A program made the translations under genes and the position numbers. Shown one piece after another: positions 32,379 through 54,334 of a stretch of DNA of 64,000 nt. The stretch lies in sequence record MZ501268.1. One strand, written 5' to 3'. Every line of letters starts with the position of its first letter. The stretch's first letter is position 1. Below the pieces are notes generated by a model that was given only the letters and a program-made list of their open reading frames with translations, had not been told where the DNA came from and ran no database searches.

Positions 32379-32595
32379 CATGACAATTAAACCATGTCCG
32401 TTATGTGCTTCTTCAGCTAAGACCTTTCGTTTTGCTTTGGTCTTTTGGGGCGTGCGTTGTACTGGCTGTATGTTATACCTCAAAGACATGAACACGTCTG
32501 AGCAATCTGCGATGAATCAATGGGATACTCGCATTACTCCTGAGGAGCGGGCATTAGCTCGGAGTAAAAAGAAAGGTAAAAAGGAGGCAACATGA
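32353..32595 (+). CDS. Lar-like (restriction alleviation) zinc-ribbon protein
   Basis: IKPCPLC..VRCTGC..SEQSAMNQWDTR. Confidence 0.65.
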   Translation: MNTDLMEPDMTIKPCPLCASSAKTFRFALVFWGVRCTGCMLYLKDMNTSEQSAMNQWDTRITPEERALARSKKKGKKEAT

Positions 32596-49794: not shown

Positions 49795-51180
49795 ATGTTG
49801 TCATTCGGTGAATTTGTTGAGAAGTCACGCCCTATTCGTCCTTTCTTGAATATTGGCGCTGGCTTCGATATCCCGACCGGAAGCTACCGTTTCGGTAAGC
49901 ACGGCGAATCTATTCTTAATGGTGGTCTTGCACCGTTCATTGCCATCGTAGGTAAAGGTAACACCTTTAAGACAGCGATTGGTTGTTTCATGATGACCCG
50001 CGTCCTGGAGCGCTACAGCAACTCTAACGGCCTGCACTACGATACCGAGTGTACGTTCAGTGCTGATCGTTTAACCAGCCTGACAAGTCGCCTGGGGCCT
50101 GATGCTGCTGCAGACTGGCTGGCAGCCGACCGCATCTATTTAACTGACGACTCGGTTATTAAAGGTAACCAGTGGTTTAAGAAGTCGGTACAGGAATATG
50201 CAGAAGCCAAGAAGAAGGCCAAGCAAGGTACCTTACCGTTCGTGGATAAAGATGGGAACCTGATTCCTTATCCGTTCCCGACAGTGAACTTCGGCGACTC
50301 CATGTCTGAGATGAAATTCGACGACCTGGAAAAGAACTACGCCAAGATGGAAATCGGCCAGGGTGAAATGCAAACCGAAGCCATGCGTGTGTCAAACGCC
50401 AAACGCATGTTAATCGAGAAGACCCAGGGCTATGCGAATGCCGGCGGGATGTATGTCATCATGACAGCACATCTCGGTAAAGAACTGAACATGGACGGGA
50501 AACCTCAAGAGAAGAAAACCACCTTTATGAAACAAGGTGACAAAATCTCTAAGGTTCCTTCTCAGATTCTGTCTCTACCAAACAACGCCTGGGAAATCTC
50601 CACCGGTACGGTTCTGATTGACAAGAACACCAAAGAGTGGCTGTACCCGAAACAGGGTCGTAATGACGTGGATACCAATGGTAACCCGGACATGATCACT
50701 CTGGTGGCGAAGAACCTGCGTGGTAAGAACGGGCCTTCTGGGGTACCGTGGGAGTTCGTGATGTCACAGTCTGAGGGTCTGCTTCCTTCCTTGACTGAGT
50801 TCCATTACATCAAGAACAACGGACGTTACGGCCTGGGCGGCAATGACCGTAATTATTATGTTGAGTTGTGCCCGGACATCAAATTGCAGCGCACCACTGT
50901 GCGTGATCGCATCGACAGTCACCCCGAGTTACGTCGTGCATTAGAGATCACCATGGAAATGTGTCAGATGCGTTTCTTGTGGCATACCCGCGATCCGAAG
51001 TACAACATGACTCCTCAGGAACTTCGTGAAGGTCTGGAGAAGAAAGGGTACAACTGGGAGCAGTTACTTAACACCCGTGGGTTCTGGACGTTTGAAGAAG
51101 ACAAGCATCCATTACCATTCTTAAGCACAATGGATCTACTCCGCATGTATCATGATGAGTACCGCCCATACTGGCTGTAA
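49795..51180 (+). CDS. uvsX: RecA/UvsX-like recombinase (phiKZ gp152-like)
   Basis: NIGAGFDIPTG, Walker A GKGNTFKT, YDTE, FGDSMS, AKNLRGKNG. Confidence 0.85.
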   Translation: MLSFGEFVEKSRPIRPFLNIGAGFDIPTGSYRFGKHGESILNGGLAPFIAIVGKGNTFKTAIGCFMMTRVLERYSNSNGLHYDTECTFSADRLTSLTSRLGPDAAADWLAADRIYLTDDSVIKGNQWFKKSVQEYAEAKKKAKQGTLPFVDKDGNLIPYPFPTVNFGDSMSEMKFDDLEKNYAKMEIGQGEMQTEAMRVSNAKRMLIEKTQGYANAGGMYVIMTAHLGKELNMDGKPQEKKTTFMKQGDKISKVPSQILSLPNNAWEISTGTVLIDKNTKEWLYPKQGRNDVDTNGNPDMITLVAKNLRGKNGPSGVPWEFVMSQSEGLLPSLTEFHYIKNNGRYGLGGNDRNYYVELCPDIKLQRTTVRDRIDSHPELRRALEITMEMCQMRFLWHTRDPKYNMTPQELREGLEKKGYNWEQLLNTRGFWTFEEDKHPLPFLSTMDLLRMYHDEYRPYWL

Positions 51181-51194
51181 GTGTACCCGCTGTG

Positions 51195-51214
51195 GGAGAG
51201 GGATAACCCTCTCC
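51195..51214 (+). terminator. hairpin terminator with variant tail (TTATACCG)
   Basis: GGAGAGGG-ATAA-CCCTCTCC, then TTCTTATACCGTC. Confidence 0.65.
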
Positions 51215-51259: not shown

Positions 51260-51679
51260 ATGCTTAATAAAGAAATACGCATTGTCGTTGCGTCAGTTAA
51301 AGGCTTCACTGATGCAGAGCGTTTAAAAATGACTATTGACGAGTTCCTCGATGACATCTACTACCTCAACGAAGGCATTGGTGAAGACGACGAAGAATTG
51401 ATCACTGACGCGAAGATTGTCTTTATCACCAACGGCGAACACCGCACAGCTGCTGAGCTCTTGCGTACTGCACTCGGTGACCGAGACATCGACATTGAAG
51501 AGATCCGTGTCGATTGGTCTAAAGGTAAGAAAGCCTTTTACGATAACTGTGCCGTCTTGGGTGCTAAATCTACCCACGGTATCATTTTTACGGATCACAA
51601 AGATGAAGGGATGCAGACGCTGTTGAAAGCGTGTCTGGATGCTGGTTCCCGTGTTCGTAGTTATAGCTCTGCTATTTAA
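51260..51679 (+). CDS. divergent SLOG (DUF2493/YAcAr-like) protein
   Basis: IRIVVASVKGFTD..IVFITNG..DWSKGKKA..HGIIFTDHKDEGMQTLL parallels the SLOG pattern. Confidence 0.55.
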   Translation: MLNKEIRIVVASVKGFTDAERLKMTIDEFLDDIYYLNEGIGEDDEELITDAKIVFITNGEHRTAAELLRTALGDRDIDIEEIRVDWSKGKKAFYDNCAVLGAKSTHGIIFTDHKDEGMQTLLKACLDAGSRVRSYSSAI

Positions 51680-51688
51680 GGTAACCCC

Positions 51689-52132
51689 ATGATAGCCTCA
51701 GAAGCCAAAGTCGGTATATTAGACATCCACACCACCCACGTAATATGCACTGTGAACTGCCAGGGTCATATGGGTCGTGGCATTGCTTTATACCTGCGTA
51801 AGTGCGTTCCGGGGCTATACGAGCGCTATAAGCACTTGTGTGACTTAGGCCTCCTCACGGTAGACAAACTCTGGATCTACCACGCACATCCCCGTCATAT
51901 TCTCTGCTTTCCCACCAAGGACCGAACCTGGGAAGACAGTAAGCTGGAATGGATCGAAGCTAACCTGATTAAGCTTCGTGATACCTACAAAGCGAAAGGC
52001 ATTGTCTCGGTTGCAATGCCTCCTCTCGGTTGTGGGAATGGTAATCTAAAGTGGGATGAGGTGCGGAACCTCATTTATGCCATCTTGGGCGATTGTGACC
52101 TGGAAGTACATATCTGTTTGGGCAGACAATAA
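51689..52132 (+). CDS. DarG/TARG1-like macrodomain (ADP-ribose hydrolase)
   Basis: TVNCQGHMGRGIAL, ILCFPTK, SKLEWIE, VAMPPLGCGNGNLKW. Confidence 0.9.
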   Translation: MIASEAKVGILDIHTTHVICTVNCQGHMGRGIALYLRKCVPGLYERYKHLCDLGLLTVDKLWIYHAHPRHILCFPTKDRTWEDSKLEWIEANLIKLRDTYKAKGIVSVAMPPLGCGNGNLKWDEVRNLIYAILGDCDLEVHICLGRQ

Positions 52133-52143
52133 TTGAGGGTACG

Positions 52144-52494
52144 TTGATGATTAATACGTTGTTCTTCCTTTACATTCTAAATACCGGGGGTCAACACGAC
52201 CTCAAAAAGATGCCGTCCTACGACGCCTGTAATGCGGCAAAGATCACTTTATTGAAAGCGGCTGAGCAACACAAGGATGTTGCACCACCCCCGTTGGTTG
52301 TGGACTGTTACAGTGTTAACGGTGTTACTGACATCGCATTCAGTGTACATACGTTCCAGGATATTCAAGACATGATCACCGAACAACGTATTCATGAACT
52401 GACCGAACGATCAAAAGAGATCAAAGACGTCAACCCGAGCGAAGCCATTAAGTATCAGCAGTTCTTAGACAACAAGGAAAAATCCCATGAGTGA
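52144..52494 (+). CDS. hypothetical protein
   Basis: 116-aa ORF in operon. Confidence 0.6.
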   Translation: MMINTLFFLYILNTGGQHDLKKMPSYDACNAAKITLLKAAEQHKDVAPPPLVVDCYSVNGVTDIAFSVHTFQDIQDMITEQRIHELTERSKEIKDVNPSEAIKYQQFLDNKEKSHE

Positions 52495-53365
52495 TGTACG
52501 GGTACTCCCCGATCCACGGGAAGATGGTAAAAGCCACATGAACGTCTACAGCCGTGGCGCAACCTGGCTTGGCCAGCAACTCTCCAATATGGCGTACTAT
52601 AACTTCGCACATCCTAAGTACGGTGTGTTCGCCTCGTTGGAAGGTTTCTGGTATTGGCTGGCAACTGGCAAGCAACATGAAGAGCTGCGTAACCTGGCGG
52701 GTGTAAAAGCCAAGATGGTGGGGCGCGACTTTGAAGCCATCCCTCTCGATACCTTTGAAGAAGAGTTCAAAGAAGCCATGCGCTTGCGCCTGGAGCAACA
52801 CCCGATCATTGCCAATGCGTTGGCCGAATCTATATTACCGCTGGAGCACTACTATTGCTACGGTGGCAAAGTCATTGATCTGTACGAACGGCATAAATGG
52901 CAGATGGAGTTTTACGAGCAATGGCGTAAAGAGAACGCACCGGAAGACCACTCCATTGTGTTATTAATCTCAGGCTCACGTAAAGAGAAAGACTACGATT
53001 CATTTAAGAACATCGTGATGACTTATCTCCAACCGTACATTGAGCGTAACAAAGACACGTACAAGATCACACTGCTGTCAGGATTGGCTTGGGAAGGTCC
53101 AGATGACATGGCGATTCGTTTATGCCGTGAAGAAGGCTTTATGTTGGTTGGTCTGCCAGCGAAATGGAAAGAGCAAGGCAAAGCGGCGGGAATGATTCGT
53201 AACGGGGCGATGGGGCGGTTGTGTAACAAAGCTCTGGTGTTCTGGGACGGGGAATCACCGGGGACAAAAGGGATGATTGATTACCTGAAGAAAAATACTA
53301 TAGACCATCTTGTGTATATGCACGGTAAACATGAACCTGACTGGAAAGCGCCGGAAGCGGCATAG
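52487..53365 (+). CDS. NADAR-like domain fused to a SLOG (YAcAr/DUF2493) domain
   Basis: N-terminal LSNM..FASLEGFW..AKMVGR..EQHPIIANAL; C-terminal LLISGSR..LLSG..W..GKAAGMIRNGAM..ALVFWDGESPGTKGMI. Confidence 0.75.
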   Translation: MSDVRVLPDPREDGKSHMNVYSRGATWLGQQLSNMAYYNFAHPKYGVFASLEGFWYWLATGKQHEELRNLAGVKAKMVGRDFEAIPLDTFEEEFKEAMRLRLEQHPIIANALAESILPLEHYYCYGGKVIDLYERHKWQMEFYEQWRKENAPEDHSIVLLISGSRKEKDYDSFKNIVMTYLQPYIERNKDTYKITLLSGLAWEGPDDMAIRLCREEGFMLVGLPAKWKEQGKAAGMIRNGAMGRLCNKALVFWDGESPGTKGMIDYLKKNTIDHLVYMHGKHEPDWKAPEAA

Positions 53366-53378
53366 AGGAGTGTAATAG

Positions 53379-53663
53379 ATGTCGACGTTGCAACTTGCTG
53401 TAAACGGTGAATATTTCGACGCCATGAAAGACGGCAGTAAAGTGGAAGAGTTTCGCTTGACAACCCCTTATTGGGAGAAGCGTTTACTCAACCGCGATTA
53501 CGATCGTCTGATTATTACACGGGGGTATCCAAGTCGTGATGATCAGTCTCGGCGTATTGATATCCCTTATAATGGTTACGAAGTAAAAACCATTACTCAT
53601 CCGCATTTTGGTGACCAGCCAGTGAATGTTTTCGCCATTAAAGTTAATCTGGAGAAATCATGA
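53379..53663 (+). CDS. ASCH-domain protein
   Basis: LQLAVNGEYFDAMKDGSKVEEFRL..YWEKRL. Confidence 0.85.
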   Translation: MSTLQLAVNGEYFDAMKDGSKVEEFRLTTPYWEKRLLNRDYDRLIITRGYPSRDDQSRRIDIPYNGYEVKTITHPHFGDQPVNVFAIKVNLEKS

Positions 53664-54334
53664 CACCTGCCCGCCAACAGACTCAGCAATTTGTGATGGA
53701 CGCAATTGCTGAAATACTCCCCGGCTCTAAGAACCGGGAGATCTACGCTGACTTCTTCTCACGCCAGACCGATGAGAGCTTCGATGCGTTAATGCAGCGT
53801 ATGGATGAGGATCAGGAGATCTTCCCGTTCTATCATCCTAACTTCACCGGTAAAGTGATTGATGTTGAGCACGTGATCAAACTCATTGAGAAACATGGGG
53901 ATACCATCATGGAGCAGCTTAATGACATCGACCCAGAAACCGGCATGCAGTATCTGACCCCGTTGAAATACCCGGTGCTGTTGTTACCGCTGCGTATTCA
54001 GCAGCAGAAACTGCAGAAGAAGATGTCGATTCCAAAAGACAACAATCACATCGATGACCTGACCAACCAACCGACCACAGAATCTAAAGGTGCGTCTTTA
54101 TCCTACCCTGAAGTGCAGATCATCTATGCAATGGGTGGCGATAAGATCCTGGAAGAAACCATGAAGGTCCGTGGTGGCGATGAGAAAGCGTTCCGTGATT
54201 ATAACAACGAAATTATTGCCAACGGCGGTGTGACTATTGCGGCGATCAGCAGCAGCAAGACCAAGGTGAAGTCCACCAAGACCGTCGCAGTAATTCTTGA
54301 AGCCATGCACTTGAGCAACAACTTGGCGAGTTAA
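53660..54334 (+). CDS. virion RNA polymerase beta subunit, C-terminal part (phiKZ gp149-like)
   Basis: LNDIDPETG, LRIQQQKLQKK, DDLTNQP..SKGASLSYPEVQI..LEETMKVRGGD parallels the beta C-terminal GQRFGEME..QEMLTVKSDD region. Confidence 0.8.
   Translation: MTPARQQTQQFVMDAIAEILPGSKNREIYADFFSRQTDESFDALMQRMDEDQEIFPFYHPNFTGKVIDVEHVIKLIEKHGDTIMEQLNDIDPETGMQYLTPLKYPVLLLPLRIQQQKLQKKMSIPKDNNHIDDLTNQPTTESKGASLSYPEVQIIYAMGGDKILEETMKVRGGDEKAFRDYNNEIIANGGVTIAAISSSKTKVKSTKTVAVILEAMHLSNNLAS

Follow-up and report, generated by a model that had tools for sequence, protein, structure and literature searches.

Phage enzymes that erase DarT marks were demonstrated experimentally in 2025 for AdfN, a NADAR protein (PMC11825919), and in 2026 for AdfM, a macrodomain (PMC13309987), in different phage groups. 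AdfM (anti-DarT factor macro) belongs to the chimalliviruses and is represented by PhiKZ gp104, PhiPA3 gp108 and Asesino gp217 (Morgan et al., Cell Rep 2026, PMC13309987). It is a DarG2-like macrodomain that gains entry to the phage nucleus, clears DNA of DarT2 marks and shields PhiKZ (PMC13309987). AdfN is T4 gp30.3 and counters DarTG1 (PMC11825919). In two comparative surveys, Iyer, Burroughs, Anantharaman and Aravind describe viral SLOG domains of the YpsA-like/YAcAr type as enriched in jumbo phages, fused with Macro domains, NADAR domains or both and co-occurring with DUF4326 (Viruses 2021, PMC7824862; Viruses 2022, PMC9503650). Here we analyse a locus at positions 51260-53663 of a 64,000-nucleotide stretch of record MZ501268.1 (the window, to which coordinates refer unless another source is named), where five small genes, named g1 to g5, lie between a UvsX-like recombinase gene and a virion RNA polymerase (vRNAP) gene of Erwinia phage AH06. 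We propose, with a probability of roughly 0.55, that g1, g2 and g4 are the core of a counter-defence unit, in a nucleus-forming jumbo phage, that strips ADP-ribose (ADPr) from nucleic-acid bases. We infer the enzymatic activities, the targets and the role of the SLOG domain from folds, catalytic residues, homology to characterised enzymes, synteny and gene fusions, which are described below.

The stretch is 100% identical to genes 157-161 of AH06, a 275-kb jumbo phage (Agricanvirus) isolated on Erwinia billingiae. RAY, also an Agricanvirus, appears in the reference list of PMC13309987 as a characterised nucleus-forming chimallivirus. The features of the locus and its flanks are as follows (aa, amino acids).

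51260..51679, + strand: g1 (gene 157), a divergent YAcAr-type SLOG paralogue of 139 aa, identified by phrog_289 and hhalign.
51689..52132, + strand: g2 (gene 158), a DarG2/AdfM-type macrodomain of 147 aa, identified by Pfam, PADLOC, NCBIfam and PDB matches.
52144/52147..52494, + strand: g3 (gene 159), an orphan small protein of 115-116 aa with no family match.
52487..53365, + strand: g4 (gene 160), a NADAR-SLOG two-domain protein of 292 aa, identified by phrog_11222 (1.3e-192) and an AlphaFold2 model.
52511..52936, + strand: NADAR domain of g4 (about aa 9-150), by structure matches.
52946..53356, + strand: SLOG domain of g4 (about aa 154-290), by structure matches and intact motifs.
53379..53663, + strand: g5 (gene 161), a small ASCH-like protein of 94 aa, by the names of its homologues and a feature score.
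49795..51180, + strand: UvsX-like recombinase (gene 156), the upstream flank, by phrog_97 (1.2e-54); the record labels it RecA-like recombinase.
51198..51213, + strand: weak terminator-like hairpin in the gap between uvsX and g1, with a 5-bp stem and a T-rich tail, by a consensus scan.
53660..54334, + strand: virion RNA polymerase beta-subunit piece (gene 162), the downstream flank, by phrog_3233 (4.1e-95).

The five open reading frames (ORFs) are separated by 9-14 nucleotides (nt) or overlap by 4-8 nt, and the start of the vRNAP beta piece overlaps the stop of g5 by 4 nt. The record labels g1 to g5, in order, DNA binding protein, ADP-ribose binding protein, hypothetical protein, DNA processing protein A and RNA binding protein. 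A first-pass annotation, made by a model from the sequence, had placed five co-oriented genes between uvsX and the vRNAP subunit. This layout holds, with all five ORFs on the + strand and flanks recognised by phrog_97 and phrog_3233.

The macrodomain protein g2 matched Pfam Macro at 3.6e-10 (40.3 bits, cut-off 22), and its best family matches were PADLOC DarG (6.9e-41) and NCBIfam antitoxin_DarG (7e-37). In the PDB, g2 matched best to two DarG macrodomains, one from M. tuberculosis (5m3i, 4.7e-24) and one from T. aquaticus (5m31, 6.7e-21), compared with 7e-6 for OARD1 and 0.26-0.9 for the Poa1p/Appr-1-p phosphatase type. Judged by these matches, g2 is nearest to the DarG clade and not to other macrodomain clades. 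It had been called a macrodomain with the DarG-type FPTK lysine in the first-pass annotation, and this lysine, Lys77, was indeed aligned with that of the DarG structures. Asn23 (TVN motif) is encoded at 51755-51757 and Lys77 (FPTK motif) at 51917-51919. When g2 was aligned with two AdfM proteins, PhiPA3 gp108 and Asesino gp217, the TVN asparagine, the PTK lysine and the PPLG loop were invariant. The catalytic lysine is K80 in T. aquaticus DarG, and the conserved asparagine was mutated as N23A in PhiKZ AdfM (residue roles: PMC11543638, PMC13309987). A tblastn search with g2 retrieved PhiPA3 gp108 (2e-14), Asesino (2e-10) and PhiKZ-like phages (7e-12). The antitoxin_DarG match spanned profile positions 8-145 of 338 and scored 127 bits against an equivalog cut-off of 250. 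Furthermore, g2 has no C-terminal DarT-binding domain, and the adjoining genes are SLOG and NADAR genes, with no darT. Because only the macrodomain half is present and no darT gene is adjacent, we regard g2 as an orphan AdfM-like protein and not as a DarG antitoxin.

AlphaFold2 modelled g4, from 13 homologues, as two domains with a predicted local distance difference test (pLDDT) score of 84.8, and a model of the N-terminal domain alone reached 93.8. When the g4 model was compared with 48,161 chains by VIA-align, the N-terminal domain (aa 2-161) matched E. coli YbiA (2b3w, Z 10.1), a Phytophthora NADAR (8bau, Z 9.1) and the NADAR of Geobacter DarG1 (8bat, Z 8.4). In a Foldseek search of the PDB with the N-domain-only model, three NADAR entries were the sole matches with E <1 (TM 0.62 and 0.61), and the same program retrieved no NADAR structure for this domain when the two-domain model was used. 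Among sequence searches, the profile of the N-terminal domain found nothing in the PDB sequences, phmmer of whole g4 against the PDB returned noise, and a Pfam NADAR search of the whole AH06 genome gave no match. Phage_30_3 was weakly matched by 1 of 150 representatives of the N-domain family. On the other hand, hhalign related this family to T4 gp30.3/AdfN with a probability of 64% (E 6.4e-5), versus 28% for YbiA (E 6e-4), and it paired Glu52 of g4 with the catalytic E36 of T4 and His121 with the last-strand His123. Among the best 150 representatives of the family, Glu52 and Asn19 were present in all 150 and His121 in 148. The catalytic NADAR glutamate is E36 in T4 and E43 in PnNADAR; the last-strand histidine marks phage gp30.3-type NADARs, this position being Glu in the YbiA type and Asp in the DarT1-linked type and in BC4488 (PMC11543638, PMC11125620). 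Taken together, the model and the alignments make the N-terminal domain of g4 a divergent, probably active phage-type NADAR.

The N-domain family is large. A profile search of 1.84 billion representatives recovered 1943 representatives at 50% clustering, and the family is present in 524 phage records, among them those of Ackermannviridae and other giant phages; a few records give it an N-glycosidase label. A Pfam census of the best 150 relatives counted DUF4326 in 32, YAcAr in 28, the DprA-type SLOG (DNA_processg_A) in 9 and Macro in 3. The fusion of a NADAR-like domain to a SLOG domain, as first annotated, is borne out by the structure models in both VIA-align and Foldseek. Its supposed rarity is not: a SLOG domain accompanies no fewer than 28 and as many as 37 of the best 150 representatives, and the two surveys already report such fusions (PMC7824862, PMC9503650).

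The C-terminal domain of g4 (aa 154-290) was closest in fold to YpsA (2nx2, Z 12.3), followed by DprA (3uqz, Z 11.2; a further DprA structure, Z 10.2), ShosA (Z 10.8), the SLOG domain of ThsA (7uxs, Z 9.7) and LOG (Z 9.1). Confident Foldseek matches of the whole g4 model were mostly to the SLOG superfamily (ShosA, DprA, ThsA). Residues 159-228 matched Pfam YAcAr (PF10686) at 4.1e-5 with 23.7 bits, under the cut-off of 28.2, and homologues reached 9.6e-13. The YAcAr/YpsA-like SLOG clade is reportedly defined by motifs, glycine-rich and polar, that follow strands 1 and 4, a definition ascribed to Burroughs et al. in 2015. The g4 domain retains the motifs GSR, GxD, AAGMIRN and WDGESPGT, and among 11 homologues of this SLOG domain the columns GSR, G..A..G.D, AG.IRN and WDG.S.GT were invariant. 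As the fold is nearest to YpsA and DprA, both nucleotide binding and binding of single-stranded DNA (ssDNA) are possible for this domain. Nothing shows the nucleotide-signal sensor that had initially been proposed for it, and YpsA and DprA match better than the ThsA SLOG. The identification of g4 as a true DprA was also considered and rejected, given the better fit to YpsA/YAcAr and the ADP-ribose enzymes found as fusion partners. A search of the AH06 genome found no other Macro, NADAR-like or YAcAr gene. A second YAcAr-like signal at AH06 32446-32565 (region L010; E 0.024, 13 bits), within a 463-aa frame, is probably noise.

The g1 family aligned end to end with the g4 SLOG family in hhalign (probability 96.2%, E 2.1e-9, 119 columns). 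Further, phrog_289 was matched both by g1 (4.2e-9) and by the C-terminal domain of g4, and the g1 homologue of pEa_SNUABM_37 matched Pfam YAcAr at 3.4e-5, so the earlier description of g1 as a divergent SLOG stands. In g1, GSR is changed to ASV, AAGMIRN to KKAFYDN and WDGESPGT to TDHKDEGM. Because these signature nucleotide-binding motifs have been replaced, g1 is a SLOG paralogue that is probably non-catalytic or re-purposed for a changed ligand. A search of the PDB with the g1 profile gave weak matches alone (E 0.068-0.09), the best being HAD-like hydrolase and sialate phosphatases. Prediction of a complex between g4 and g1 scored 0.20 against a mark of 0.32, which counts neither for nor against binding.

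Comparison with related phages separated the stable part of the locus from the variable part. Between uvsX and vRNAP, Ea35-70 and RAY carry g1, the macrodomain gene and the NADAR-SLOG gene, with no g3 and no g5, and three metagenomic AH06-like contigs carry all five genes. In pEa_SNUABM_37 and a metagenomic contig, a 138-aa g1 homologue is followed by a 429-aa Macro-NADAR-SLOG protein, and in Proteus phage 10 by a 276-aa Macro-SLOG protein without NADAR. The fused genes of pEa_SNUABM_37 (L012:2560-3849) and Proteus phage 10 (L005:4001-4831) are labelled hypothetical in their records and replace the separate genes of AH06. In every relative examined, g1, the macrodomain and SLOG occur together, the NADAR is missing from Proteus phage 10 alone, the macrodomain gene is immediately preceded by a gene of 138-139 aa, and the UvsX-like recombinase keeps its position. 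The homology of the upstream gene to g1 was checked in five relatives. The stable unit is therefore the pseudo-SLOG, the macrodomain and SLOG, with NADAR as a usual member. The first-pass view that all five genes form one module conserved together is not supported, since g3 and g5 are confined to AH06 and three metagenomic relatives and what is kept is g1, the macrodomain, usually the NADAR, and SLOG. In relatives the NADAR-SLOG pair is also found fused to DUF4326, for which a phosphatase activity on ADPr products has been predicted. We argue from the repeated fusion in relatives that the Macro, NADAR and SLOG parts act together.

In the counter-defence unit that we propose, g2 would hydrolyse thymine-linked ADP-ribose left by DarT2-type toxins, like PhiKZ AdfM, and the NADAR domain of g4 would hydrolyse guanine-linked ADP-ribose left by DarT1-type or similar toxins, like T4 AdfN. 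SLOG would be an accessory module that binds ssDNA, as DprA does, or an ADP-ribose-derived nucleotide, and g1 would be a non-catalytic paralogue working with the g4 SLOG. The reading of g2 as a DNA eraser follows from its specific likeness to DarG and from what has been established for AdfM. That of g4 follows from the conserved catalytic pair of phage NADARs, the precedent of AdfN and the removal of guanine-ADPr in vitro by all four NADAR subtypes assayed (PMC11125620). On the host side, DarT genes were found in 29 of the 401 species sampled from Brenneria's family, a stand-in for the family of the host. The initial idea that one locus covers both DarT chemistries is compatible with a DarG2-type macrodomain beside a phage-type NADAR, both of which keep predicted catalytic residues (Asn and Lys in the former, Glu and His in the latter).

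Several observations weigh against this interpretation. Neither Pfam NADAR (PF08719) nor Phage_30_3 (PF08010) matched the N-terminal domain of g4 at E<=1. T4 K43, the lysine at Glu+7 (K95 in EcC7), aligns with Gln63 of g4; Lys62 adjoins it in AH06, and a basic residue occurs at 59, 62 or 63 in 109 of 150 relatives and at none of these positions in the other 41. DarT1 toxicity outside infection was not rescued by T4 gp30.3 (PMC11125620), so activity of a NADAR in vitro does not guarantee counter-defence. The AdfM genes of PhiPA3 and Asesino are stand-alone genes with no SLOG among their annotated neighbours, and SLOG would therefore be dispensable for AdfM function in general. As for the hosts, the tally of DarT genes in Brenneria's family comes without genus names, and this family-level figure does not place DarTG in the Erwinia hosts themselves. 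Finally, Iyer et al. consider it more likely that the Macro, NADAR and SLOG domains of phages act on soluble ADPr derivatives (PMC9503650, PMC7824862).

This last prediction is the main rival to a DNA eraser, and we consider it possible, albeit clearly the less probable of the two. The substrates cleared by the module would then be soluble molecules made from ADPr, either immune signals or toxins (for example Thoeris gcADPR variants, ADPr-1''-phosphate or ADPr>P), and not DNA adducts, with Macro, NADAR and SLOG each cutting a different bond or with SLOG sequestering the molecule. It has been published for phage combinations of Macro, NADAR, SLOG and DUF4326 (PMC9503650, PMC7824862), and the fusion of the NADAR-SLOG pair to DUF4326 in relatives agrees with it. 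The nucleotide-binding signature of the g4 SLOG is intact, and the domain resembles the 3'cADPR-binding SLOG of ThsA (Z 9.7), although it is nearer to YpsA and DprA. A literature search found no experimentally characterised phage SLOG on which such a role could lean, and g2 belongs specifically to the DarG type, in which DNA is the target of the characterised members.

Two lesser rivals were weighed as well. The SLOG proteins might be DprA-like ssDNA-binding mediators for UvsX, the macrodomain and NADAR cleaning modified bases before recombination or replication. The locus does directly follow uvsX in all relatives, the records label g4 'DNA processing protein A' or DprA-like and g1 'DNA binding protein', and Iyer et al. 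suggest that in jumbo phages DprA/Smf serves as an additional ssDNA-binding protein (PMC7824862/PMC9503650). Despite two DprA structures at Z 11.2 and 10.2 and Pfam DNA_processg_A in 9 of 150 relatives, the best fold match of g4 is YpsA and its Pfam match is YAcAr, and the recurrent fusion partners process ADP-ribose and are not recombination domains. Gene order differs in PhiPA3 and Asesino, and no annotated SLOG lies near their macrodomain genes, in a comparison that did not extend to their uvsX regions. We consider this role improbable. Less probable still, and in our view very unlikely, is a housekeeping function, in which the proteins would process Appr>p and ADPr-1''P, left behind by NAD-dependent RNA repair or ligation, or would undo ADP-ribosylation of host targets by the phage itself. 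Phage Macro and NADAR domains have also been tied to RNA-repair contexts (PMC9503650, PMC7824862), and several records label g2 homologues 'phosphatase' or 'Appr-1-p processing'. Yet g2 matched DarG in the PDB at 4.7e-24, against 0.26-0.9 for the Poa1p/Appr-1-p phosphatase type, and no RNA ligase, KptA or ADP-ribosyltransferase is named by Pfam, PHROG or the record annotation at the locus and its flanks.

Within the DNA-eraser interpretation, a more specific and doubtful version would give SLOG, with the conserved pseudo-SLOG g1 as its partner, an indispensable part in an eraser of several activities, that of a targeting or regulatory subunit. Binding ssDNA or the released ADP-ribose, it would couple removal of thymine-ADPr by the macrodomain to that of guanine-ADPr by NADAR in the phage nucleus. 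If it were true, one phage locus would resist both DarTG classes, and the widespread viral YAcAr SLOG domains would gain a first function.

The two remaining genes are later insertions in the AH06 sub-lineage that fall outside the core of the proposed counter-defence unit. No match to g3 was found in the domain and family libraries, and AH06 was the sole phage record with a match, in keeping with its description as a small unknown. The gene is absent from Ea35-70 and RAY and is an open frame in three metagenomic relatives. Its product is 35-44% identical in the two relatives compared, whereas g1, g2, g4, uvsX and vRNAP are 71-90% identical. The regions compared were 52147-52494 of the window, L015:2760-3116 and L016:2775-3116. 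The protein has a hydrophobic N-terminus (FLYIL) and two conserved cysteines. Fast divergence together with a preserved frame, hydrophobic N-terminus and pair of cysteines would suit a protein that interacts with the host and is under diversifying pressure.

The g5 protein is 65-79% identical to a protein of about 93 aa that abounds in Enterobacterales prophages and is named 'ASCH domain-containing' at NCBI. It was matched in 331 phage records (AH06 included), mostly temperate, and g5-like genes also occur in Stx, P22-like, Jersey-like and lambdoid phages or prophages, with eaA, DUF550 and DUF551 as neighbours; in the contexts displayed, neither a macrodomain nor a NADAR was among the annotated neighbours. 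Pfam ASCH (PF04266) did not match g5 at E<=1 and was sub-threshold in 9 of 18 homologues (best E 0.024), and a language-model (Atlas) feature score to ASCH clusters was 0.93. The g5 profile against the PDB gave one spurious glycosidase match. Of the initial ASCH call, a small ASCH-like protein remains, and an ASCH domain proper is plausible, not established. Membership of g5 in an ADP-ribose module was rejected: the gene is absent from Ea35-70 and RAY and is a sub-lineage insertion common to unrelated temperate phages. Its product (53379-53663) is 96.8% identical to that of a metagenomic relative (L015:4001-4285), in which the flanking genes are 72-90% identical, and this suggests a recent exchange or unusually strong constraint. 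A Brenneria bubanii contig (JAKMAJ010000008.1) holds two g5-like copies (73% and 69%; L020 and L023), about 14 kb apart and in opposite orientation.

Some further observations concern the flanks and the host family. The UvsX-like recombinase (49795-51180, 461 aa) was recognised by phrog_97 alone, with no Pfam RecA-family match at E<=1. The hairpin at 51198..51213 is a possible transcription-unit boundary, although the number of hairpin-type sites in the consensus scan was not above the shuffled expectation. A Sigma-70 promoter scan gave fewer sites than shuffled sequence and is uninformative because the phage carries its own RNA polymerases. Two sequencing runs contain the whole stretch; both are labelled 'DNA?' and may derive from the source sample. 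In five genomes of Brenneria's family (G182, G113, G189, G132 and G243), two DarT-family ORFs lie adjacent, about 60 nt apart, one with a strong Pfam DarT match (~1e-51) and the other with a weak one (~1e-20). These may be tandem DarT paralogues.

The AH06 locus is not a new kind of system, since Iyer et al. have catalogued the domain combination by comparative genomics and AdfM and AdfN have been characterised in other phages. In Agricanvirus, the two putative eraser types lie adjacent, and close relatives merge them in one protein with SLOG joined. As such, the locus offers a compact natural system in which to ask whether one phage can resist both DarTG classes, what role viral SLOG domains play, and why a degenerate SLOG copy is kept beside an active one.

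Compared with bacterial DarG2, the antitoxin of DarTG2, g2 shares the macrodomain sequence and the catalytic residues but has neither the C-terminal DarT-binding domain nor a DarT gene beside it. The g4 SLOG shares its fold with the SLOG sensor of ThsA of Thoeris (Z 9.7 to 7uxs); g4 has no SIR2 or other effector domain, and YpsA and DprA are nearer. The architectures of Iyer et al. comprise the same domain set as the AH06 locus. In the accessible portions of their papers, however, the processing of soluble signals is predicted, the Erwinia locus, the g1 partner and the position between uvsX and vRNAP are unnamed, and both erasers in one operon or polypeptide with a pseudo-SLOG partner at a fixed position are not described. 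With AdfN/T4 gp30.3 (PMC11825919, PMC11125620), g4 shares the NADAR fold, the catalytic glutamate and the last-strand histidine, but it belongs to a separate large phage subfamily, has a shifted lysine position and is fused to SLOG. Like AdfM, g2 is a single-domain DarG2-like macrodomain without an adjacent DarT, in which the asparagine and the PTK lysine are kept. It is, however, just 30-35% identical to AdfM and nearer to bacterial DarG and the phiEco32-type macrodomain (~44%). Furthermore, g2 lies in a conserved operon with SLOG genes and is fused in relatives, whereas the AdfM genes of PhiPA3 and Asesino stand alone elsewhere in their genomes.

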